DNA of 64,000 nt from Oculina patagonica (Eukaryota). Positions 39,400 through 56,270 of this stretch are shown one piece after another; position 1 is the stretch's first letter, and every line of letters starts with the position of its first letter. The stretch covers positions 47,926,001 to 47,990,000 of the forward strand of contig NC_135758.1 of the NCBI RefSeq assembly GCF_052425735.1. Direction: 5' to 3'. The notes below the pieces were generated by a model, which did no database searches, was not told the origin of the DNA, and was given only the letters and a program-made list of their open reading frames with translations. Position numbers and translations under genes: made by a program.

Positions 39400-41971
39400 G
39401 CTGCACCGGACTGCCTCGTAACGGTTACTTAATGCCTCACTGCTTCGCTGTTTTCCTGTGATGGCAAACTGCGTGGTTTAAGCTCGTTGACTTTCGTTTT
39501 ATTATTGCGACGTTTACTTCGCTTCATTAAATGCATGGTACGCCTTACCTTAAAAACATACTGTACTGTATACTGAGGGTTATTTGCATAAGAATACTGC
39601 AAAACGCTTTTGGTTGATCGGGTAACAGATATATGTTCCTTTATTTTCTAAAAAAAATGTTTATTAATAAACTTATCTTAGATGGTCCTTAGGTGTTGGT
39701 TTTGCTTAAATTATTTCCCAGGATCGACATGCTATGCATATATACAAAAGTAGTTTAGTTCGGAGAACTGGAGAACTGGAGTCTTCGCACGTTTTGTCAA
39801 AACACAGCAGTAAAGATTTACCTTTCAGCTAGAATTAATTTGAACAGTGTTGGGCAAGTTGATATAGACTTAGGACTCACTCAATAAACACAAAGTAACT
39901 TGTCTTTTGTGAAGTTACCTTCGCAGTTGCAGCTGTTTATTTGTTAACTTTTCATCGATAAACAGAAGAACTCAATTTGAATGATATCACTTTACCGTCA
40001 CTCAAAAAAAGAGGCATTTCCTTAGACGGGTGTAAGAATATCACCTTACAATAAAAGTAACCGTTATATAGGGCATGGATCTATTAAAATAAAGCTGGTG
40101 CGCAAATAAGTCCAAAATGAGATTTGTACGTGTTGCAGAGATCGAGAAAATTAAAAAGTCAAATTGCAAAAAAGGGTTCTGAGCATGTTGTATTTAAAAC
40201 AATTCCTCTTGACAAAACTGAAACACTCTATCAGTAAAGGTTCAAAAAAGTTATCATTATCTTCAAGTTACAAAATTAAACGATATAAGATAAAATTGAA
40301 AATAAATTTAAAAGTTTCCTGCAAATTTAATTCTGGTTGTGTTATAATGGATTTATTGGATCACCAGCCCATTACGGTCTGGAACTACGGGAGTACAATT
40401 TACGACACAATTTCTAAAATAAATATATGGAAGAAACTGAATTTGTTAATAGCAAAACACAAATCTTAAGCAAATCAGGAGTAAAAACCTAAACCCTCTT
40501 GCAACATATGCCACATATGAAACCGTAATCACAACACCGGCCCTTGGGCGACGCAAGTAAAAATGTGGTTGAATTGATTGGGTGGGTAAAGGTAGTGACC
40601 ATAATTCTCACGAAGTAAATAAAATAAAAGATCATAAATATATTATCTTTATTTTGACAGGGTACTATTTAAAGCAAGAAGCTTTTGGGGCCATGTATTC
40701 CTGATCGAATTGGAATATTCCTGATCAAAGTGGTAGTAGTAACGCAGTGGGCGTAAGGAGGTGTTCCACTGTACTGATGACACGACACTACACAAACACA
40801 GGTGGATGATCTTGGTAATAGCTATGTGAGCGGGCAAGATACGCCTCAAAATGAAGTTTACTTTGGCCTTTATTTGTGGAGCAGAGAAAGAGTAAAGCGG
40901 GATGAGTGGATTTTCTTTTTTCTAGCCGGTAATTAGCCTACCGATATACGTTTTAAAGGGCACGCAAAATGCTCCAGGTATTTGGGGCGTGCAGAATAGA
41001 TTGACGGCCCGACTAATCCATCACAATATATGTCATCAATGCTCTCACGGAACATTTGCAACGATGAGATGGGTTTTTAAAACCGTGCAAACGAATTGCA
41101 AAGAACTTGCAATTATATTTCACCAAGTTGATTACACAAATATCTTTTTTTTTGTAGTTTGAAATATGTTTGCAATAGGCTTATGAGAGAAGGGGCCAAA
41201 TAAACGTGCGAACAAGCAAGGACGACTAAAAACAAGGCATGACTCACTTTGCCCCAACTCTCTCGCACATCGCCCCGAGTTTCAATTTACCCACGTAATG
41301 AACTCCTACCCGGGGAATATCAAGAGAATACCTTTTTTTCTCCAGGTGAATTTTGCACGAGAAAAGATTAACTGTCGGTGTTTGTACTTTGCTCCTAATG
41401 TTACGACGACGATTGTTTCACACATGTAGGGATAGACAAAAGTTGATCAAACAGATACGCGCGGGTTTTGGTTGGTCCAGCAGCTTCACAACTACGAACA
41501 CGCAAGACTCGCAATGCAACTAAACTAACTGACTCACTTCAGTCCGACAAAAAATGTACAACTGGAATTTAAACACAATATATTTGTTTATTTCACCTGT
41601 TTTGAGTCAGTCGATAATTATAATGTGTTAAATAAACTACAACTTAATATTATTTCGGATAATTTCGTTTCAAAATAATGATAACAACGATTAATGCGAT
41701 TGGACGTTTCAATGTATTATGTAACATGATTATAACGAAACTAGTGTCAATATAATACGATGTTTAAAATGGATGTGATTACATGTAGCACAAAAAGCGG
41801 GAATCCTGCGTGCAAAAAGCTAACTTTAAAAACACTTTGGCGCAAATTGAATCACATTACACGCTCTTTTGTGAATAACATTTCGTCGACAAGACAGTAA
41901 AATTTGACGGCACATTCGAATTACCGAAAATGCAAAAATACAACAATACAATAAACAGCCAAGTCGTCGAA

Positions 41972-42795
41972 ATGGCTTTAACACTTGGATTACATATAAG
42001 TCGCCTAAATTGCAATCTATTTTTTCCAAAAAAGAAAAAGATTACACTTATTTCGATTCGATAGTTATAAACGTATGTTTCCATGGATAAATAAAATATG
42101 TGTACTGAAAGGGCGTAATAATACGGTATTGAGAAATAGAAATTCGATTCTGCAGAATAGTGGTAACGATTCCTATGATAGTCTATATATAAAAATATAT
42201 TGTTCATCATATAATTATATAAATATATAAAGTGTCTTGCATTCACAAAATCGAACAAGTTTTACAGAGAAAGCCTTCATATGTAACGAGAGTTTCTGCA
42301 TTTGCCTTGTCAATTTCTTATGCAAGTGGAAAAATATTCTAAATGTTAGGGTGGATTAAGCGTGGTTCATATTAGCGACATAATGGCTTTAACACTTGGA
42401 TTACATATAAGTCGCCTAAATTGCAATCTATTTTTTCCAAAAAAAAAAAGATTACACTTATTTCGATTCGATAGTTATAAACTTATGTGTCCATGGATAA
42501 AAAAAAAAATATGTGTACTGAAAGGGCGTAATAATACGGTATTGAGAAATAGAAATTCGATTCTGCAGAATAGTGGTAACGATTCCTATGATAGTCGATA
42601 TATAAAAATATATTGTTCATCATATAATTATATAAATATATAAAGTGTCTTGCATTCACAAAATCGAACAAGTTTTACAGAGAAAGCCTTCATATGTAAC
42701 GAGAGTTTCTGCATTTGCCTTGTCAATTTCTTATGCAAGTGGAAAAATATTCTAAATGTTAGGGTGGATTAAGCGTGGTTCATATTAGCGACATA
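41972..42795. repeat. ~411-bp tandem duplication
   Basis: atggctttaacacttgg...ttagcgacataa at 41972-42382 and 42383-42795, near identical. Most of the unit recurs at ~49357-49710. Confidence 0.92.
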
Positions 42796-42987
42796 ACATC
42801 GACAAAAAGGCAAGGTCACGCAGCGAAAATTTTGATGATTTTTTGTCACACCAGTGTGAAGATCATTAACGACACAGCAGGAACAATGACATAAGCATAA
42901 CTGAACGACAGAAGGAAACAAACATAGCTGATCTTTTCTTTATATTCTTATGTGCATGTTGTTATGTCGCTAGTGTGAACCAGGCTT
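42771..42987. mobile_element. MITE (copy also at ~49684-49897)
   Basis: aagcgtggttcatattagcgacataac ... gttatgtcgctagtgtgaaccaggctt inverted ends. Confidence 0.65.
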
Positions 42988-43141
42988 CACCTAATGAAGT
43001 GAGGCAGAGTTCAAGAAATTCGTGGTCTAGACTGGGTTCAAACGCAGTTCACAGGAACATTTGGCTGAACCACGTTTTTTACCGGGTCACATAGAAACAT
43101 CAATTCAGTCGGCCATTAAACAGTTTTTGACTGGATTGAGT

Positions 43142-45771
43142 TTAAGTTGAACATGTTCGACGAACAACCTTTTTCCTTTTTCTGTCGTCAATGACGTCAC
43201 TTCTCCCTGGCTGACTATCGTGACAAACGTCACCCACATACGTCACATCCACGTGTTTCCCTTTTTCCTTCCGGATGACAAATCGTACTTTCACATTGCA
43301 TTCTGGTCGCTTGCATTCCGCGCCTCCTCTGAAGAACACTGCTGAGTGGATTTTCCGAGAGTTTTCTGATCTCACGTGATTATTCTTGAAGCGCAGACTG
43401 CACCATGGGTTGCTTTCTTTAACTTTGCTGAGGAAGATTCGAGTCCAGTCCCCACTCAACAATCGGCCACCGCTCGGGAATGTGTTGATTGGAATTCTCG
43501 CCCAGTCCTCTTTGGACAATTTAAATCTTGCTGTAGTTCCATCGATGTTCTTTCGAAAATACTTTTTCTGTTTTCTGGTTTCGTCTTCATCGTCAGATGA
43601 ATCTGAATCATCCGAGTAATCCTAGAAACAATAACAAATTACATCTTAATAAAAAAATAATAATAATAATAACAAAAAAGACCCAACTGAAACAAAACGA
43701 TGGATACGAGAAGCCATGCACATAAACTAACTTTTCTATCAAAGTGAAGAACAGGACGGTGCAAAGGTATAAGGGTGTGCACAGAGATTAGTGAAATCAT
43801 ATCAAACAACTGAATAAATCAAGCCTTGGATGAAGAAAAAGATAATAGAAGAAAAAGATAATTTTTCTTTAGTATTACTTAATTTAGTTTTCAAATCTCG
43901 ATATATCACCTTCAAACACAATCGCGATTTCTTCGAAAACAAGGAAACAACAAATTAGTTAACAAACAAAAGTGATCTAACGAAAAAATGGAAATCAATA
44001 AGAGCACTTACCATTCTATTAGCAAAGTCCTGTCGTGCAAAATCCACATTTTGCGAGGACAGTGTGTACGAACTTGGATCAACCTGTTTTCGTGACGAAC
44101 AGAAAGTTTGGTTTAGGACAAATGTGAATTGAAGCTTCGTGTACATAGCCACAAACAACACCCAATACAACTGAACTGTATGAACGAATCTGTGTTCAGA
44201 ATGATTCTTTCTACAACTACATAGCTAATTTCAATATAATGTTACATTTTTAACTTAAATATAAAAGATGTTCTGGGGAATTACAAGTGTATACCTAAGA
44301 ATTGAAGCTTATGAAGACAAGAATAAAGTTGCGTGGCTTCGTTATTAGACTGGTCATTGTGAATAGTGATACCACAATATAACTACATTATAACACAATT
44401 CTGCTGTTCATATATTTGACACAATAAATCAACTCGGGAAAAAAGTTATTCTGTTTGGAGTTTTTGTTTCCGTATTTCTTTGCTTACTGTTAATTGGACT
44501 ATGAATGCTCCTGGAAACCTGCAGTTGTCTGATTCAACATTTAAAGGAACTTAAATCACTTAAATCACTTCAAAGTACTTTACCTTGAATGGCACATGGG
44601 ATGTGCTAGGAGAAGTATTGAAACGATTCACGGGCACCATGATAACAGAAGGACGTGGGGCTTCCACACCAAATGCAGGATAATGTGAAGATTCCTTCTG
44701 CGCATGACAACAACAGTTACAATTGTGGGCACTCCTCTGCTGGTTTGGGACCATGCCATGGGTTTCAGTCTGGGAGAATTGCTTTATATGTTGTGGATTG
44801 TAAGAATTGTAGCCACCATAGTAGGCAGGCATTTCTGTGTGGTGGTTCATCTGATAACTGGTATTTGTTTCAAAGTTTCCTGGTTGTGAAGCTGGTATTT
44901 CCCCCTGACTAGACATGTGGTAAAGTGGCGTACTCGTATAAACCGATGGAAGTGACATGTTGGTCTGGTTGGTGCTGATCTGGTAAGATGTCACAATCTC
45001 AGGAGAACCATTCTGATAAGATGACAATGTCCCATGCGTATCAACCTGGTAAGCTGACATAGTTCCATTAGTATTCATCTGGTACGCTGACGATGGGTAT
45101 TGGTTATTCATTTGCGAAATATCTGGCTGATGACTTAGATGGTAAGATGGCATTATCTCAGGCTCGTGGGAATTTAACTGGAACGGCAATTCCTTCTGTT
45201 GTTCAGCTGTCTTGTTTAACCCCTCTCCATTGTGAACACTTGATTGATTTACTGGTGATTGCACCTCAGGTTCCACTGGATACCTTTGCTCTGGCATGTT
45301 CTTGGACTGCTGTCCCCCTGGGAAACTTTCTGCTAATGGAATTTTTGTTTGGGGGTCAGCCTCAAATCTTGACTGCACTTCTTGGCCCAGTTTTTCCACG
45401 TGATTTGCTATCTGATTAACAGTCAACACTTTACCTTTGGCAGCATGGTTTTCTAACTGAACATGATTAACAGTGATAAGTTCATCTGTGGCAGCGTTAT
45501 GATCAGATGTTGCTCCTTGGACGTTACTTATTTGGATGCTGAGTACATCTTCATCGGGGTTGAGCGCTACTTCATAAATTGATTCTTGTGGCAATGAAAT
45601 TGTGTGGTGGTCGACTGTGGTGCAAGATGTGTCTGATTTTTCTGCCTTGAGGACAGGCATCCCGCCTATGGAGATAATTCCATTGCTTTGCCCATTGCAA
45701 CTTGACACTGTCGTTTCAATCTTGATTGGGCAGCCATTTGTGATGTCGTTTAAGGAGTACATCCCGGCCAT
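43142..45771 (-). CDS. Uncharacterised ~579-aa protein: low-complexity Q/S/N/Y-rich region, acidic linker, C-terminal putative WRKY/GCM1-like Zn DNA-binding domain; copy 1
   Basis: Exons 45771-44584, 44083-44012 and 43621-43142, all gt/ag phase 0, with an in-frame stop upstream of the ATG. The C-terminal domain reads WTRIF...NPWCSLRFKNNHV...SRK...FFRGGAECKRPECNVKVRFVI...VDVTYVGDVCH, followed by NLS-like RKRKK. Confidence 0.8.
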
Positions 45772-48700
45772 TATCTTTGCTTTATCCTTATCGATTGGTC
45801 ACATAGAGCAAACTTCGCGATGTCAATGCTTAACTTAGGAGAACAAGTAACAAAACAGCAAAAGGGAGTTAAGTCAAACTAGCATATTTAACTACATCAT
45901 AACACAACAAGACAACAAAAAATGGGAACTAAATTTCTTCATATCATGCTGATGCAACACAAAAACAATTTACTTGCTCTTTGTAACTCTTGCTTTTGCT
46001 ACAGCTCACAGATCCTCACACATTTGTGCCTACCACATAATCGTAAGTATTATAATTTAACCAATGTCCATGTGGCTGAATTAAACTCAACATGTCCAAC
46101 ACGGTCTAATACGAACTGATTATAAAGCCAACCACACAGCGCTTGTGATATCAAGGAAAGACCTCAGTGACGAATGGATAAATCGAGGCACCAGATGAAC
46201 CTCACCGTTGATTCCTACTGCGAATTAACCCTAGTCAAGTAACAAAACAAAACCACACGAGACAATATCTTTGTCTTCGGTGGCACTCCGAGTACCAACG
46301 TTATATTTGCTTCACAGAACCCCTTTCACAAGCATGTCATGTGAACTTTATTTCGGCCATCTTCCTAAATCGGATCCTAAACGTTACGACATAAGGCAAC
46401 CTTGAACTCTGAAAAGAGCATATAATCGGATATTTGTATTTTGTAGGACCAGTAATTCCCAATACCTGTTTTTAAAAATAACATATTCTCGGGGTAATAT
46501 GAACATGCCTGGCAGCGAGTGGGACTTGAGAGAGGTAAGTTTGTTATTAATAGAAACAAAATGGATATTAAAATAAAAGCCAAGACGCGGTTTTAAGACA
46601 CAGGGACACTGACTGATCATGCAAACTTTATTAAACTGATCTGTACGTGTTTACTCGTAGCGTCAATTGTTTGCTTAGAAGCCAGTTTAGCATAATTATG
46701 ATCTTAATCTCCACCTACGCGTTCTCGGACATGAACAGTCAGCATTTTGAATAAATTAATCAACACTTTAACACTTTTACTCATGTAGAAGCGAAATTCT
46801 CAGACACTTCAATAAAGTTATTCTTTCATTTCGTTAGTTCAATTTTGCAAACCTATTTTTGAGTCACAGTCGGTTTGACATGTTTAACAAATTTAGCGCT
46901 GGAGAATGTTGGTATGTACATGTTGAGTGTCACGACTTGAAACGCAATGACCTTTTTATTAAATAAAAGAATAACACATGTTTCTGCAAGTATCTTTACC
47001 TTTTGGTAAAACGAAAACAAATTGTAACATGTTTTTATCACATCTCTTTTGTTCCTTCCGCTCACAACCTACGAATTGGGGGCTGAATAAGTTGTCGACA
47101 GGAATAACATACAAACGCAGTCGTTATGGACACTTGAATTACTGGCATGTTCAAGAAAAAATACAGATAATGCACGAACGACAAAATCAACGCTCTTTTG
47201 AATAAAAAAACCTTCTATAATAGAGAAATAGTAGGACCATAATGTTGTAAAGTGAATTTGGACGTTCGAGAGAAGTTTTACAAAAGCCCGAATTGGCCAC
47301 ATGCTGAGGAACATGTATATGAGAAGAGTCAAATTTGAATCACGCAACACAACTTTAATTGCATCTAGTAAACGAAATCTACATTTCGCGGTTTACACAG
47401 TTGAACACAGCAAAGAGGGCAAATCTTTTACAAAGAAATCGTCACAGCGAGCGTTTTTGAGTGCATTTCAAGTAAGATATTAGTTAAACAACAGGGTCGT
47501 GGCCTCGGGGCCGTTTCTGCCTGCCCTCATATGTTGCCACGTGAGCTTCGAAAGTTACAAAAAATGTCGCCTCGTGTGTCACAAGTCCTGCCAGAACCTA
47601 AGTGCCCGGTAGAAACCATTCTAATATGCAAAAGGAAGAAAAGTTACGTTTTCAACAAAAATTCTCATAAAGCGGTAGTTTGCGCTCTTTGCATATTTAT
47701 TCGATACTGAGCGATCTTTCAATGAGTTTGAAAAGTCTATTGTTCTATTAGCCTTTTGACTTGCTAACCACAGCAAAATTAGTTGCCAATATTCCATACT
47801 CTTCGCACTCTTAGAGACCTCTAATCTACGCGGAATACTTGCTTTTTTGCAACTATTTGTTGACAAGCGAAGCACGATCGAGAGAGGTTGCTTCATCTTT
47901 GCCATTGCCTATCTTACTATGCGGCGTGACAAATTAGTATTCATGACAGTCGCGTCCTGTGTAATAATTACGTTTTGCATCACAAAACATGCGTTAACAC
48001 AGTGTTTTGAAATATCCTATCACCTTAACCAAGAAAGACACAATAAAGGCAAATTATTGTTGTTGGCTTCACAAACAAAACATTTCTCACGTCTTTTGGT
48101 TCAAAGGAATACGATTCCGCGCTTCATTCCGCTACTAGTGCCACAAACCATTCGAAGGGTCCGATAGTGTTTAAACCATCTTAATTGTCAATACACACAC
48201 ATGCATACATCATCTGAATCTGAGGAATTTTGCCTTCCCGTAAAACGTACCAGATTTGAGTTAAATCAGCAACATTGTTTAATAATTTAAGGGAACTGGG
48301 ACACTCCGACACAAGTTATAAACTCAGTTTGGGTTGTGATGTTGTTTACGCAGCATGTTCACTGTCAATTACTCAATAACACATGATGGTCACATTTGGT
48401 AATTTAAAATATTTGCAAGCATCATCCCCATTTGCTGGCAAAAAACTATTTCCCAAAGAAGTAGGTTGTTAGGTACTTTAAAATACTTAGGAAGTTTGTT
48501 TGTTGAAAGGGCAAAGCTCACAAACTCACCTTTCGTCTCGGAACGCGCTTGGTCGTGCGAGCAGAAATGTTGATGCGCTCCGCTGAGCACATGCGCGATG
48601 GGAGAGCTGGTGTAAATCAATATCTCGCGTTTGACTGGGACTCAAAGGTCAATGAACATGTTGATTGACACACATCTCAGAAAACCCCGTGAGTTATCGA

Positions 48701-50051
48701 GTTACAACTTTACTTCTGTTCGTTTTGTTTAGCGCGTTTTTAATACTTTGCGTGAACATAAACTAAAATTTAGCAATATCTCCAGGCCCCTTTCCACAAT
48801 AATACGTTTACGTTCAAAATACTGGTCGATTTGATAAACGAAGGAAAAAATGTCATTAAATATAAAAAGCTCAGACCATTGAAATCTTCTCCCAAAGTGG
48901 GGTGCAACACAGCTCTATTCGCAAGGCGTAGGCGGGTTGGAAAGTGGACCTTGGAGAAAATGACGCAATTCCGGTCCAATTTGTAAATGTCGTGTCAGTA
49001 ATGCTTGTGGTTCATTGCTCTTTTTAAATCGAACGTCAGCCGGACCGGGTACGTCAACACGTCACACCCCCATCTTTTTATGAAACTGTTTTGTGGACAA
49101 TAACATTATTCTGTTACTTTTAAAGCTTGATGAACGGAGGTTTTGAAGTCAAATTCGCGTCAAATAAATGACTCGCCTAGAACGATTATTCAGTTTATGT
49201 CTGGGAGCCCCGAGGGCGCAAGGGGAGGGGGGCATGTGGGAGTCCCCCAGGACCCTTGCTATTACGACGGACATGTCCATGTACACCTCTCTAAGATTGA
49301 AAGCTTCAGGTGGTTCCTGCTGCGACACCTCTCTAGAACGGACAACGGACACTTTGAAAAAAAAGATTACACTTTTTTCGATTCGATAGCTATAAACGTA
49401 TGTTTCCATGGATAAATAAAATATGTGCGCTGAAGGCGTATTTATACCGTATTGAGAAATAGAAATTCGATTCTGCGGAATAGTGGTAACGATTCTTATG
49501 ATAGTCGATATATAAAAATATATTGTTCATCATATAATTATATAAATATATAATGTGTCTTGCATTCACAAAATCGAACAAGTTTTACAGAGAAAGCCTT
49601 CATATGTAATAAGAGTTCCTGTATTTGCCTTGTCAATTTCTTATGCAAGTTTTGGAAAAATATTCTTAATGTTAGGGCCGGTTAAGCGTGGTTCATATTA
49701 GCGACATAACATCGACAAAAAGGCAAGGTCACGCAGCGAAAATTTTGATGCACTTTTGTCACACCAGTGTGAAGATCATTAACGACACAGCAGGAACAAT
49801 GACATAAGCATAACTGAACAACAGAGGGAAAAAGTAACTGATCTTTTCTTTATATTCTTATGTGCATGTTGTTATGTCGCTAGTGTGGACCAGGCTTCAC
49901 CTAATGAAGTAAGGCAGAGTTCAAGAAATTCGTGGTCTAGACTGTGTTCAAACGCAGTTCACAGGAACATTTGGCTGAACCACGTTTTTTACCGGGTCAC
50001 GTAGAAACGTCAATTCAGTCGGCCATTAAACAGTTTTTGTCTCGATCGAGT

Positions 50052-52691
50052 TTAAGTTGAACATGTTCGACGAACAACCTTTTTCCTTTTTCTGTCGTCA
50101 ATGACGTCACTTCTCCCTGGCTGACTGTCGTGGCAAACGTCACCCACATACGTCACATCTACGTGCTTTCCTTTTTCCTTCCGGATGACAAATCGTACTT
50201 TCACGTTGCATTCTGGTCGCTTGCATTCCGCTCCTCCTCTGAAGAACACCGCTGAGTGGATTTTCCGAGAGTTTTCTGATCTCACGTGATTATTCTTGAA
50301 GCGCAGACTGCACCATGGGTTGCTTTCTTTAACTTTACTGAGGAAGATTCGAGTCCAGTCCCCACTCAACAATCGGCCACCGCTCGGGAATGTGTTGATT
50401 GGAATTCTCGCCCAGTCCTCTTTGGACAATTTAAATCTTGCTGTAGTTCCATCGATGTTCTTTCGAAAATACTTTTTCTGTTTTCTGGTTTCGTCTTCAT
50501 CGTCAGATGAATCTGAATCATCCGAGTAATCCTAGAAACAATAACAAATTACATCTTAATAAAAAAATTAATAATAATAACAAAAAAGACCTAACTGAAA
50601 CAAAACGATGGATATGAGAAGCCATGCACTTAAACTAACTTTTCTATCAAAGTGAAGAACAGGACGGTGCAAAGGTATGAGGGCGTGCACAGAGATTAGT
50701 GAAATCATATCAAACAACTGAGTAAATCAAGCCTTGGATGAAAAGGATCTAGCTTTCAGAAGAAAAAGATAATGATTTTTCTTCAGCATTACTTGATCTA
50801 ATTTTCAAATCTCGATATATCAACTTTATATACAATCGCGATTTCTTCGAAAACAAGGAAACAACAAATTAGTAAACAAACAAAAGTGATCCAACGAAAA
50901 AATGGAAATCAATAAGAGTACCTACCATTCTATTAGCAAAGTCCTGTCGTGCAAAATCCACATTTTGCGAGGACAGTGTGTACGAACTTGGATCAACCTG
51001 TTTTTGAGACGAACAGAAAGTTTGGTTTAGGACAAATGTGAATTGAAGCTTCGTGTACATAGCGACAAACAACACCCAATACAACTGAACTGTATGAACG
51101 AATCTGTGTTCAGAATGATTCTCTCCACAACTACATAGCTTATTTCACTAGTAATGTTACATTTTTAACTTAAATATAAAAGATGTTCTCGGGGAATTAC
51201 AAGGGTATACCTAAGAATTGAGGCTTATGAAGACAAGAATAAAGTTGCGTGGCTTCGTTATTAGACTGGTCATTGTGAATAGTGGTACCACAATATAACT
51301 ACATTATAACACAATTCTGCTGTTCATATATTTGACACATTAAATCAACTCGGGAAAAAAGTTATTCTGTTTGGAGTTTTTGTTTCCGTATTTCTTTGCT
51401 TACTGTTAATTGGACTATGAATGCTCCTGGAAACCTGCAGTTGTAAGATTCAACATTTAAAGGAACTTAAATCACTTCAAATCACTTCAAAGTACTTTAC
51501 CTTGAATGGCACATGGGATGTGCTAGGAGAAGTATTGAAACGATTCACGGGCACCATGATAACAGAAGGACGTGGAGCTTCCACACCAAAAGCAGGATAA
51601 TGGGAAGTTTCCTTCTGCGCATGACAACAACAGTTACAATTGTGGGTACTCCTCTGCTGGTTTGGGACCATGCCATGGGTTTCAGTCTGGGAGAATTGCT
51701 TTATATGTTGTGGATTGTAAGAATTGTAGCCACCAAAGTAGGCAGGCATTTCTGTGTGGTGGTTCATCTGATAACTGGTATTTGTTTCAAAGTTTCCTGG
51801 TTGTGAAGCTGGTATTTCCCCCTGACTAGACATGTGGTAAAGTGGTGTACTCGTATAAACCGATGGAAGTGACATGTTGGTCTGGTTGGTGCTGATCTGG
51901 TAAGATGTCACAATCTCAGGAGAACCATTCTGATAAGATGACAATGTCCCATGCGTATCAACCTGGTAAGCTGCCATAGTGCCATTAGTATTCATCTGGT
52001 ACGCTGACGATGGGTATTGGTTATTCATTTGCGAAATATCTGGCTGATGACTCAGATGGTAAGATGGCATTATCTCAGGCTCGTGGGAATTTAACTGGAA
52101 CGGCAATTCCTTCTGTTGTTCAGCTGTCTTGTTTAACCCCTCTCCATTGTGAACACTTGATTGATTAACTGGTGATTGCACCTCAGGTTCCACTGGATAC
52201 CTTTGCTCTGACATGTTCTTGGACTGCTGTCCCCCTGGAAAACTTTCTGCTAATGGAATTTTCGTTTGGGGGTCAGCCTCAAATCTTGACTGCACTTCTT
52301 GGTTGCCCAGTTTTTCCACGTGATTTGCTATCTGATTAACAGTCAACACTTCATCTTTGGCAGCATGGTTTTCTAACTGAACATGATTAACAGTGATAAG
52401 TTCATCTGTGACAGCGTTATGATCAGAGGTTGCTCCTTGGACGTTACTTATTTGGATGCTGAGTACATCTTCATCGGGGTTGAGTGCTACTTCATAAATT
52501 GATTCTTGTGGCAATGAAATTGTGTGGTGGTCGACTGTGGTGCAAGATGTGTCTGATTTTTCTGCCTTGAGAACAGGCATCCCGCCTATGGAGATAATTC
52601 CATTGCTTTGCCCATTGCAACTTGACACTGTCGTTTCAATCTTGATTGGGCAGCCATTTGTGATGTCGTTTAAGGAGTACATCCCGGCCAT
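50052..52691 (-). CDS. Same uncharacterised protein, copy 2 (~580 aa)
   Basis: Exons 52691-51501, 50997-50926 and 50531-50052. Splice sites and frame are preserved. Confidence 0.8.
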
Positions 52692-55600
52692 TATCTTTGC
52701 TTTATCCTTATCGATTGGTCACATGGAGCAAACTTCGCGATGTCAATGCTTAACTTAGGAGAACAAGTAACAAAACAGCAAAAGGGAGTTAAGTCAAACT
52801 AGCATATTTAACTACATCATAACACAACACAACAGAAAATAAAATAGGAACTAAATTTAGTTCATATCATGCTGATGCAACACAGAAACAATTTACTTGC
52901 TCTTTGTAACTATTGCTTTTGCTATAGCTCACAGATCCTTGCACATTTGTGCCTATCACATAATCGTAAGTATTATAATTTAACCAATGTCCATGTGGCT
53001 GATTTAAACTCAACATGTCCAACACGGTCTAATACGAACTGATTATAAAGCCAACCACGCAGCGCTCGTAATATCAAGGAAAGACCTCAGTGACGAATGG
53101 ATAAATCGAGGCACCAAATGAACCTCACCGTTGATTCCTACTGCGAATTAACCCTAGTCAAGTAACAAAACAAAACCACACGAGACAATATCTTTGTCTT
53201 CGGTGGCACTCCGAGTACCAACGTTATATTTGCTTCACAGAACCCCTTTCACAAGCATGTCATGTTAACTTTATTTCGGCCATCTTCCTAAATCGGATCC
53301 TAAACGTTACGACATAAGGCAACCTTGAACTCTGAAAAGAGCATATAATCGGATATTTGTATTTTGTAGGACCAGTAATTCCCAATACCTGTTTTTAAAA
53401 ATAACATATTCTCGGGGTAATATGAACATGCCTGGCAGCGAGTGAGACTTGAGAGAGGTAAGTTTGTTATTAATAGAAACAAAATGGATATTAAAATAAA
53501 AGCCAAGACGCGGTTTTAAGACACAGGGACACTGACTGATCATGCAAACTTTATTAAACTGATCTGTACGTGTTTACTCGTAGCGTCAATTGTTTGCTTA
53601 GAAGCCAGTTTAGCATAATTATGATCTTAATCTCCACCTACGCGTTCTCGGACATGAACAGTCAGCATTTTGAATAAATTAATCAACACTTTAACACTTA
53701 CTCATGTAGAAGCGAAATTCTCAGACACTTCAATAAAGTTATTCTTTCATTTCGTTAGTTCAATTTTGCAAACCTATTTTTGAGTCACAGTCGGTTTGAC
53801 ATGTTTAACAATTTAGCGCTGGAGAATGTTGGTATGTACATGTTGAGTGCCACGACTTGAAACGCAATGACCTTTTTAATAAATAAAAGAATAACACATG
53901 TTTCTGCAAGTATCCTTACCTTTTGGTAAAACGAAAACAAATAACAACATGTTTTTATCACATCTCTTTTGTTCCTTCCGCTCACAACCTACGAATTGGG
54001 GGCTGAATTAGTTGTCGACAGGAACTACATTCAAGCGCAGTCGTTATGGACACTTGAATTACTGGCATGTTCAAGAAAAAAATACAGATAATACACGAAC
54101 GACAAAGTCAACGCTCTTTTGAATAAAAAAACCTTCTATAATAGAGACATAGTAGGACCATAATGTTGTAAAGTGAATTTGGACGTTCGAGAGAAGTTTT
54201 ACAAAAGCCCGAATTAGTCTCATGCTGAGGAACATGTATATGAGAAGAGTCAAATTTGTATCACGCAACACAACTTAAATGGCATCTAGTAAACGAAATC
54301 TACATTTCGCGGTTTACACAGTTCAACACAGCAAAGAGGGCAAATCTTTTACAAAGAAATCGTCACAGCGAGCGTTTTTGAGTGCATTTCAAGTAAGATA
54401 TTAGTTAAACAACAGGGTCGTGGCCTCGGGGCCGTTTCTGCCTGCCCTCATATGTTGCCACGAGAGCTTCGAAAGTTACAAAAAATGTCGCCTCGTGTGT
54501 CACAAGTCCTGCCAGAACCTAAGTGCCCGGTAGAAACCATTCTAATATGCAAAAGGAAGAAAAGTTACGTTTTCAACAAAAATTCTCATAAAGCGGTAGT
54601 TTGCGCTCTTTGCATATTTATTCGATACTGAGCGATCTTTCAATGAGTTTGAAAAGTCTATTGTTCTATTAGCCTTTTGACTTGCTAACCACAGCAAAAT
54701 TAGTTGCCAATATTCCATACTCTTCGCACTCTTAGAGACCTCTAATCTACGCCGAATACTTGCTTTTTTGCAACTATTTGTTGACAAGCGAAGCACGATC
54801 GAGAGAGGTTGCTTCATCTTTGCCATTGCCTATCTTACTATGCGGCGTGACAAATTAGTATTCATGACAGTCGCGTCCTGTGTAATAATTACGTTTTGCA
54901 TCACAAAACATGCGTTAACACAGTGTTTTGAAATATCCTATCACCTTAACCAAGAAAGACACAATAAAGGCAAATTATTGTTGTTGGCTTCACAAACAAA
55001 ACATTTCTCACGTCTTTTGGTTCAAAGGAATACGATTCCGCGCTTCATTCCGCTACTTGTGCTACAAACCATTCGAAGGGTCCGATAGTGTTTAAACCAT
55101 CTTAATTGTCAATACACACACATGCATACATCATCTGAATCTGAGGAATTTTGCCTTCCCGTAAAACGTACCAGATTTGAGTTAAATCAGCAACATTGTT
55201 TAATAATTTAAGAGAACTGGGACACTCCGACACAAGTTATAAACTCAGTTTGGGTTGTGATGTTGTTTACGCAGCATGTTCACTGTCAATTACTCAATAA
55301 CACATGATGGTCACATTTGGTAATTTAGAATATTTGCAAGCATCATCCCCGTTTGCTGGCAAAAAACTATTTCCCAAAGAAGTAGGTTGTTAGGTACTTT
55401 AAAATACTTAGGAAGTTTGTTTGTCGAAAGGGCAAAGCTCACAAACTCACCTTTCGTCTCGGAACGCGCTTGGTCGTGCGAGCAGAAATGTTGATGCGCT
55501 CCGCTGAGCACATGCGCGATGGGAGAGCTGGTGTAAATCAATATCTCGCGTTTGACTGGGACTCAAAGGTCAATGAACATGTTGATTGTCACACATCTCA

Positions 55601-56270
55601 GAAAACCCCGTGAGTTATCGAGTTACAACTTGACTTCTGTTCGTTTTGTTTAGCGCGTTTTTAATACTTTGCGTGAACATAAACTAAAATTTAGCAATAT
55701 CTCCAGGCCCCTTTCCACAATAATGCGTTTACGTTCAAAATACTGGTCGATTTGATAAACGAATGAAAAAATGTCATTAAATATAAAAAGCTCAGACCAT
55801 TGAAATCTTCTCCCAAAGTGGGGTGCAACACAGCTCTATTCGCAAGGCGTAGGCGGGTTGGAAAGGGGACCTTGGAGAAAATGACGCAATTCCGGTCCAA
55901 ATTTGTAAATGTCGTGTCAGTAATGCTTGTGGTTCATTGCTCTTTTTGAATCGAACGTCAGCCGGACCGGGTACGTCAACACGTCACACCCCCATCGTTT
56001 TATGAAACTGGACAATAACATTATTCTGTTACTTTTAAAGCTTGATGAACGGAGGTTTTGAAGTCAAATTCGCGTCAAATAAATGACTCGCCTAGAACGA
56101 TTATTCAGTTTATGTCTGGGAGCCCCGAGGGCGCAAGGGGAGGGGGCATGTGGGATTCCCCCAGGACCCTTGCTATTACGACGGACATGTCCATGTACAC
56201 CTCTCGATTGAAAGCTTCAGGTGGTTCCTGCTGCGACACCTCTCTAGAACGGACAACGGACACTTTGAAT

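Follow-up and report, generated by a model that had tools for sequence, protein, structure and literature searches.

Analysis of a 64,000-nucleotide stretch of the Oculina patagonica genome (contig NC_135758.1, positions 47,926,001 to 47,990,000; this whole stretch is referred to as the window, and positions are counted from its first letter) was centered on a minus-strand gene at 45771 to 43142, whose last exon encodes a basic zinc domain with a predicted WRKY-GCM1 fold, of the kind found in transposases of Mutator-like elements (MULEs). Reading of the sequence gave a gene of three exons with a product of 579 amino acids (aa). The ATG at 45771 opens a minus-strand open reading frame (ORF) of 403 codons in the ORF list, and the three coding segments are separated by GT..AG introns, with every junction in phase 0 (Table 1). 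Removal of both introns at the exact boundaries was observed in contigs assembled from three runs of three studies, and a single 1,375-nt contig crosses all three exons. The gene is spliced and transcribed, in agreement with a preliminary description of this DNA that had noted normal introns from the sequence. A protein present at NCBI, 'hypothetical protein ACROYT_G004144 [Oculina patagonica]', is also 579 aa in length and is 100% identical to the product of exon 1.

The domain encoded by exon 3 spans approximately 115 aa and is strongly basic, with an isoelectric point (pI) of 10.3 and 28 lysine and arginine residues in 122 residues. An AlphaFold2 model of the domain had a mean predicted local distance difference test (pLDDT) value of 87.8, rising to ∼96 across residues 20 to 135 (exon 3 numbering). 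The modeled strands, at residues 76 to 83, 97 to 103, 111 to 116, 123 to 129, and 131 to 135, would form an antiparallel beta-sheet core, and a predicted helix at residues 59 to 70 directly precedes the first of them. A helix ahead of the first core strand is common to the MULE-associated families of the WRKY-GCM1 superfamily (Babu et al. 2006, PMC1702500). Foldseek ranked WRKY domains first, with a probability of 0.96 to 0.98 and an E value of ∼0.1; as no match in the PDB was obtained with this program at E ≤ 0.001, we relied on VIA-align Z scores and on a sequence profile. When the Foldseek candidates were re-aligned with VIA-align, the top seven were WRKY18 (Z 6.5), WRKY18 with W-box DNA (6.3), Aft2 (6.0), WRKY1 (5.9), RRS1-WRKY (5.7), WRKY33 (5.2), and WRKY11 (5.0), and the first unrelated fold followed these rows at Z 4.7. 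The match to WRKY18 comprised 79 aligned residues at a root mean square deviation (rmsd) of 3.2, and coverage of the targets reached 79 of 80 residues. Independently of Foldseek, 48,161 fold representatives were searched, and the highest scores were those of DNA-bound Aft2 (Z 5.8) and WRKY33 (Z 5.2).

Sequence comparisons were consistent with these structural matches. A profile of the domain matched nine PDB sequences, six of which were WRKY domains (WRKY1, E 0.0024; WRKY4, E 0.017); structures of WRKY1, WRKY4, WRKY18, WRKY33, and WRKY17 were among the matches, aligned over the C-x4-C...H segment. WRKY domains were reached by the profile only, as a phmmer search of the PDB sequences with the single domain sequence gave no match. 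The Pfam WRKY model matched 3 of 95 family members (best E value, 0.026), and the query itself had no Pfam match at E ≤ 10. Neighbors by ESM features were the GCM, FLYWCH, FAR1, and DBD_Tnp_Mut (MuDR) Pfam families, each falling under the reliability line of the tool. Because the lines of evidence from sequence and structure agree, with WRKY and Aft2 at the top of the structure searches, a WRKY-GCM1 fold can be predicted for the domain with high confidence, as had been suggested in the preliminary description.

An exhaustive HMMER search with the domain detected 167 representative proteins at E < 1e-3. In an alignment of 95 domains, W40, C74, C103, C108, and H134 were nearly invariant, giving a conserved putative ligand pattern of C-x28-C-x4-C-x25-H. 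The pattern expected from the preliminary description, C-x4-5-C...H-x-H, was retained in the C103-x4-C108 pair and was not retained at its C-terminal end, where one His only is conserved; the upstream Cys74 is conserved instead. A Cys immediately before H134 was present in just 24 of the 95 homologs. The domain thus departs from described members of the superfamily in having no HxH or HxC pair, in having a Cys 28 residues before the C-x4-C, and in having an N-terminal extension of ∼55 residues. Conserved F-K-x-N and S-R-K motifs are located where WRKY domains have their DNA-contacting WRKYGQK strand, on the corresponding strand and loop.

The relatives of the domain pointed to transposases. 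The names of AlphaFold DB cluster matches to the domain included 'in NOF-FB transposable element' and 'Transposase MuDR', and at least 25 long animal homologs (570 to 2,100 aa) had a common region of 500 to 700 aa after the domain. This downstream region conserves a DATG, a second D, a CxxH, and an E within the sequence context TN..EN.F..LK, a set that we take to be the signature of the Mutator superfamily. The Pfam MULE model matched just two of the long homologs (E 0.09), and their transposase nature was therefore judged from fold matches and motif conservation. A model of one downstream region (pLDDT 77.9) had as its best match the Drosophila 120.7-kDa NOF protein of the FB transposon (E 2.2e-23), followed in order by K. 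lactis Alpha3, FAR1/FRS/FHY3, ZSWIM proteins, and IS256-family transposases; its matches in the PDB were the Hermes, ISCth4, Mos1, RAG1, and P element transposases. The check proposed in the preliminary description, whether the relatives are N termini of MULE/NOF-like transposases, was thereby answered in the affirmative. In some of the relatives, PHD fingers, USP domains, or Ulp1 protease domains are also present, and the PHD architecture of animal MULEs was already recorded by Babu et al. (PMC1702500). Two very long predicted proteins from other animals, P0034 and P0067, contained the domain (twice in P0034) together with a core of the NOF type and a protease domain of the Ulp1 type, with a USP (ubiquitin hydrolase) domain also present in P0034 and weak PHD-finger matches in P0067; they may be true fusions encoded by elements or chimeras of gene prediction.

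In a quick maximum-likelihood tree, the domains of the host genes clustered on short branches, with support of 86 to 91 in the Shimodaira-Hasegawa-like approximate likelihood ratio test (SH-aLRT), and were nested among transposase-linked domains. This topology is consistent with a single capture of a transposase domain without proving one, because the alignment is short. Within the Oculina genome, a relic on contig C4 has the domain directly ahead of a NOF-like core. NOF-like transposase gene relics were observed at C4:29285834-29287968 (loci L015 and L016) and at ∼31.90 Mb of C4, with a domain of 34% identity followed by a core of the Asp-Asp-Glu (DDE) type. The layout of these relics, domain and then DDE core, is presumed to be the ancestral architecture.

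A genome-wide search detected the domain at just 8 places in the 529-Mb genome. Five of these are host-type copies, four within ∼210 kb on the chromosome of the window (C1) and one on contig C3, and the remaining three lie on C4, next to transposase-core remnants. A profile of the transposase core had matches on C4 only and none on C1. The protein terminates 25 residues past H134 and hence has no DDE core, and inverted repeats of ≥25 nt flanking the gene were not found. The preliminary description had noted neither a DDE region nor terminal inverted repeats, and the profile and repeat searches agreed with it. It had also named the possibility of a high-copy gene internal to a transposable element. 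This was rejected from the 8 genomic places and the lack of terminal inverted repeats; the gene is one of five host copies and is spliced and, as described below, subject to purifying selection.

Comparison of the window with itself by blastn detected a tandem duplication of a 6.9-kb unit, in which 42442 to 49358 matches 49357 to 56269 at 97.0%. Each unit contains an intact copy of the gene. A unit of ∼413 bp occurs in tandem just 3′ of the gene (41971 to 42796 and 49357 to 49709), at the edge of the 6.9-kb duplication, and the boundary of the duplication falls within this repeat. A 28-nt inverted repeat, also 3′ of the gene (42771 to 42798 and 42960 to 42987, 161 nt apart), suggests a small insertion resembling a miniature inverted-repeat transposable element.

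Among the other host-type copies, a TAG inside the paralog at C1:47.785 Mb was considered as a sign of a broken frame and rejected, as the TAG is an intron acceptor. In all three contig runs, the depth of the core of the last exon was ∼8 to 15 times that of exon 1. The high-depth contigs had ∼10 differences from the reference and diverged from it at 43566 into the exact acidic-linker sequence of paralog L013 (C1:47785724-47786185). From this depth and the match to its linker, L013 seems to be expressed at a far higher level than the window's gene, with the reservation that expression is poorly measured by the depth of contigs.

A noncoding block upstream of the ATG was conserved along with the gene. 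It is 72% identical at the matching position in the locus of another coral (contig L020), where other noncoding DNA was not alignable, and 99% identical between the two tandem units, compared with 97% overall; otherwise, it is essentially unique in the genome. No long ORF was found in the block, whose role may be that of a promoter, of an enhancer, or of an untranslated exon at the 5′ end.

Orthologs of the gene were detected in Orbicella faveolata, Montipora capricornis, M. foliosa, and Nematostella vectensis (LOC116606246 and LOC125556674), all of which are named as uncharacterized, and one AlphaFold DB cluster entry is, from its accession, presumably a Pocillopora ortholog. The paralogs of M. 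capricornis and M. foliosa are adjacent, as judged from consecutive accession numbers. The orthologs share a layout of a variable N-terminal region, an RxSVIMVP motif, an acidic stretch, and the domain. The same three-exon structure was present in L020; with regard to synteny, this metagenome-style contig provides the three exons and the upstream block alone, with no annotation of neighbors.

The level of constraint differed between the exons. For exon 3, the protein was 95.6% identical to that of the other coral, with a ratio of nonsynonymous to synonymous substitution rates (dN/dS) of 0.034 at a dS of 0.48, and comparison of the twin genes detected nine synonymous differences and no nonsynonymous difference (dN/dS 0). 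For exon 1, identity to the other coral was 58% (dN/dS 0.36), and the twins differed by 12 synonymous and 8 nonsynonymous changes and one codon indel (dN/dS 0.17). Comparison with paralog L012 gave a dN/dS of 0.24 over the whole exon. Purifying selection on the last exon is very strong. The gene is conserved across Hexacorallia, and the family, as far as seen, is limited to this group. A literature search found no description of this protein family and no paper naming the LOC identifiers of the orthologs. Together with the lack of a Pfam match and the 'uncharacterized' names of all orthologs, this upheld the view in the preliminary description that the family is an undescribed one.

The region ahead of the domain had a different character. 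Residues 1 to 396 consist of 43% S, Q, N, P, and T with a pI of 5.5, and a Pfam scan of each exon product (E ≤ 10) matched no family. An [SA]YQ motif occurs five times in this region, the first four spaced at exactly 11 residues. A Cys cluster that follows has the consensus CxCxCH among coral orthologs, with C351 nearly invariant, and was not present in the Nematostella homolog in the ortholog alignment. The composition of the protein given in the preliminary description was confirmed throughout: ∼400 aa of low-complexity sequence with recurring (S/A)YQ motifs and a CNCCCH cluster (HNCNCCCH), and then, in the last exon, an acidic linker (DYSDDSDSSDDEDE), a basic domain with a C-x4-C (CKRPEC) and VTYVGDVCH, and a terminal RKRKK.

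The most conserved element ahead of the domain was the RxSVIMVP motif, of which R373, V376, I377, and M378 were invariant in 11 orthologs and paralogs, that of Nematostella included. Of 221 retrieved proteins, 53 had the motif; all 53 are members of the host-gene family, and no transposase-linked homolog had it. Every host-family protein with an N-terminal region carries it. VIMV presumably matches the psi-psi-x-psi pattern of motifs that interact with the small ubiquitin-like modifier (SUMO), and PSVIM, by the same assumption, the pattern PxVx[LM]. Resemblance to SUMO-interacting and HP1-binding peptides would suggest, if it points anywhere, chromatin or repressive functions. The 'activation-type' N-terminal region proposed in the preliminary description was not supported; the sole invariant element is this short hydrophobic motif, which bears more resemblance to a SUMO- or HP1-type docking site.

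Table 1. Positions in the window of the gene, its encoded elements, and the duplicated units
Feature	Position	Strand	Remarks
Exon 1	44584..45771	-	396 codons; S/Q/N/P/T-rich low-complexity N-terminal region; from ORF, donor site, and spliced contigs
Intron 1	44084..44583	-	GT..AG, phase 0; joint 44081>44582 (cut +2) in contigs of 3 runs
Exon 2	44012..44083	-	24 codons; identical in copy B; also found in the other coral's locus L020
Intron 2	43622..44011	-	GT..AG, phase 0; joint 43620>44011 (cut +1) in 3 runs
Exon 3	43142..43621	-	159 codons plus stop; acidic linker, zinc domain, basic tail
Four 11-residue (S/A)YQ repeats	44962..45093	-	Residues 227-270; [SA]YQ at 0-based 228, 239, 250, 261; partly kept in Orbicella ortholog
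Cys cluster HNCNCCCH	44704..44727	-	Residues 349-356
RPSVIMVP signature motif, candidate peptide docking site	44632..44655	-	Residues 373-380
Acidic Ser/Asp linker DYSDDSDSSDDEDE	43580..43621	-	Start of exon 3; pI 4.1; DSDSSDD kept in coral orthologs
WRKY-GCM1-like domain (predicted)	43217..43564	-	Exon 3 residues 20-135: N-terminal extension 20-55, helix 59-70, five strands within 76-135
Cys74 codon, proposed fourth metal ligand	43400..43402	-	Cys in 94/95 homologs; putative ligand role, from sequence
Cys103-x4-Cys108	43298..43315	-	Cys in 94/95 and 90/95 homologs; aligned to both Cys of WRKY1/WRKY4
His134 codon, sole conserved C-terminal ligand	43220..43222	-	His in 90/95; aligned to second His of WRKY HxH
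RKRKK basic tail, candidate nuclear localization signal	43169..43183	-	pI of tail 10.9; putative signal
Tandem unit A, holds main gene	42442..49356		blastn self-comparison
Tandem unit B	49357..56269		blastn self-comparison
Intact twin gene, unit B	50052..52691	-	Exons 52691-51501, 50997-50926, 50531-50052; same splice sites, open frame
Conserved noncoding block	47497..48733		1.24 kb, 1.7-3 kb upstream of ATG; twin at 54418-55654

There are well-documented cases of DNA-binding domains of transposases that became regulators, as in WRKY, GCM, FLYWCH, Aft1/2, and FAR1. NOF/Foldback-type MULE transposases (Drosophila NOF, P16320, and metazoan relatives) have a domain homologous to that of the coral gene (to E 1e-10, with 25 to 45% identity) and the same W, C, C-x4-C, and H. 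In comparison with these transposases, the coral gene is without a catalytic core, a PHD finger, and inverted repeats and is present in few copies; furthermore, it has gained a disordered region of ∼420 aa with motifs of its own, and its domain is C-terminal and not N-terminal. FAR1/FHY3 and ZSWIM proteins were domesticated from the same transposon superfamily and match the core of the long relatives of the domain. They retain the transposase core and a SWIM finger, whereas the coral gene retains the DNA-binding domain only. The plant WRKY domains (PF03106) provided the best profile and structure matches and share the C-x4-C spacing, four to five antiparallel strands, and a core identity of 19 to 25%, but the coral domain has neither WRKYGQK nor HxH, is not matched by the Pfam WRKY model, and adds the ∼55-residue extension and a helix. 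FLYWCH and GCM are animal domains that belong to the same superfamily, have the same presumed transposon origin, and were weak neighbors by ESM features; they differ in that the coral domain has no Pfam match to either and another ligand pattern, with its family seen in Hexacorallia.

Aft1/Aft2 (Rcs1) and Rbf1 of yeasts are transcription factors that arose from MULE WRKY-GCM1 domains (Babu et al. 2006, PMC1702500; Aft2-DNA, 4lmg). Aft2 took the same route from transposase to regulator and aligned with the coral domain over 74 residues (Z 5.8 to 6.0; rmsd, ∼3), whereas it represents an independent event in another kingdom, with 7 to 8% identity. Aft also belongs to an insert-containing family with 20 to 70 residues between the Cys residues (Babu et al., PMC1702500), compared with a spacer of 4 in the coral domain. 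The coral gene is not a new kind of thing, because the route from transposase domain to regulator is established for this superfamily (PMC1702500). What is new is a family for which no description was found and for which there is no Pfam model, with a distinctive ligand pattern and extension and deep conservation in Hexacorallia.

Overall, it is very probable that the gene belongs to the host, with a domain of NOF/MULE WRKY-GCM1 origin, and is not a mobile element. The domesticated transposase DNA-binding domain envisaged in the preliminary description is well supported by the transposase relatives, the lack of mobility features, the purifying selection, and the distant orthologs. A locus belonging to a mobile or recently mobile element, as a transposase fragment or a captured gene fragment, could have given rise to the transposase-derived domain, the tandem duplication, and the short inverted repeat 3′ of the gene. 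The duplication is, however, a simple tandem one, flanking inverted repeats are lacking, and there are five host copies only, while the same exons and upstream block recur in another coral, orthologs extend to Nematostella, and purifying selection is strong. An origin of the locus in a mobile element has thereby been largely refuted and is highly improbable.

With regard to function, we consider it rather probable that this host gene of transposase origin encodes a regulator of transcription or chromatin that binds DNA in a sequence-specific manner. One zinc ion would be bound by Cys74, Cys103, Cys108, and His134, and an edge of the beta-sheet would enter the major groove of DNA, as in WRKY and Aft2. 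The RKRKK tail may mediate nuclear import, and the disordered N-terminal region would recruit chromatin or transcription cofactors via conserved short motifs, chiefly RxSVIMVP. The Ser/Asp acidic stretch beside the basic domain may modulate DNA binding. The strongly basic domain and its basic tail are most readily viewed as a sequence-specific DNA-binding module stabilized by zinc, and the acidic, S/Q/N/P/T-rich N-terminal part as a disordered platform for partners. We infer DNA binding, zinc binding, nuclear localization, and a transcriptional role, and with these putative roles a DNA-binding regulator is the most likely product.

Several observations weigh against this interpretation. The HxH/HxC pair of the superfamily is missing, the position two residues before H134 being V, I, or L in 79 of the 95 homologs. 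The Z scores of 5 to 6.5 are middling in absolute terms, and the E values of the profile matches are marginal. For the runs that supplied the contigs (X1, X3, and X4), the label of RNA is based on a guess, and the only run that is certain to be poly(A) contained two reads for the gene; expression can therefore be described only qualitatively. Finally, some FLYWCH domains have been reported to mediate protein contacts and not DNA binding (PMC3169594).

The last of these points bears on the idea that the coral domain is a protein-interaction module that has lost DNA binding, a role suggested for certain Mod(mdg4) FLYWCH domains. The noncanonical ligand pattern and the large N-terminal extension added to the WRKY core would agree with such a module, for which FLYWCH is the precedent (PMC3169594), but the high pI and lysine and arginine content of the domain and the basic tail after it argue for contact with DNA, as do the F-K-x-N and S-R-K motifs kept at the position equivalent to WRKYGQK and the fact that the domain occupies the place of the DNA-binding domain in transposases. 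We regard loss of DNA binding as improbable. A factor for genome defense or chromatin silencing, in which the domain still recognizes the ends or relics of NOF-like elements and RxSVIMVP recruits silencing machinery of the SUMO or HP1 type, is also unlikely, if marginally less so. The domain is of transposase descent, and a transposase ordinarily uses its N-terminal domain to bind the ends of its own element (Babu et al. 2006, PMC1702500); NOF-like relics are present in the Oculina genome. These relics, however, amount to a handful of degraded copies, yet the domain has hardly changed over several hundred million years, a pattern more in keeping with fixed host targets than with an arms race. 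Both the invariance of the motif, which is limited to the family, and its presumed fit to the SUMO-interacting and PxVx[LM] patterns would favor recruitment of silencing machinery, but the Pro of PxVxL is not kept in Nematostella, and the acidic stretch lies ∼45 residues from the motif and not adjoining it, as it would in typical phospho-dependent SUMO-interacting motifs.

A more extensive proposal can be put forward tentatively, as a possibility that we would not yet favor. The gene would represent a class of regulators specific to hexacorals, in which a variant WRKY-GCM1 fold with the C-x28-C-x4-C-x25-H pattern and the ∼55-residue extension falls outside the families compared here. The same domain would be the DNA-binding domain, unassigned until now, of animal NOF/Foldback transposases, RxSVIMVP would be a new cofactor-docking site, and binding sites descended from the ends of ancient NOF elements would have been wired into coral gene networks.

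The analysis assigns a fold to a domain without a Pfam model, which in many animals stands at the N-terminal end of NOF/Foldback-like transposases, and supplies a profile of it. The function of the gene can be tested directly, because Nematostella has orthologs and is genetically tractable. The lineage-specific regulators of reef corals and sea anemones are almost unstudied, and the gene, if the interpretation is true, would be an ancient and very strongly conserved case of the recruitment of a transposase domain in reef-building corals and sea anemones.

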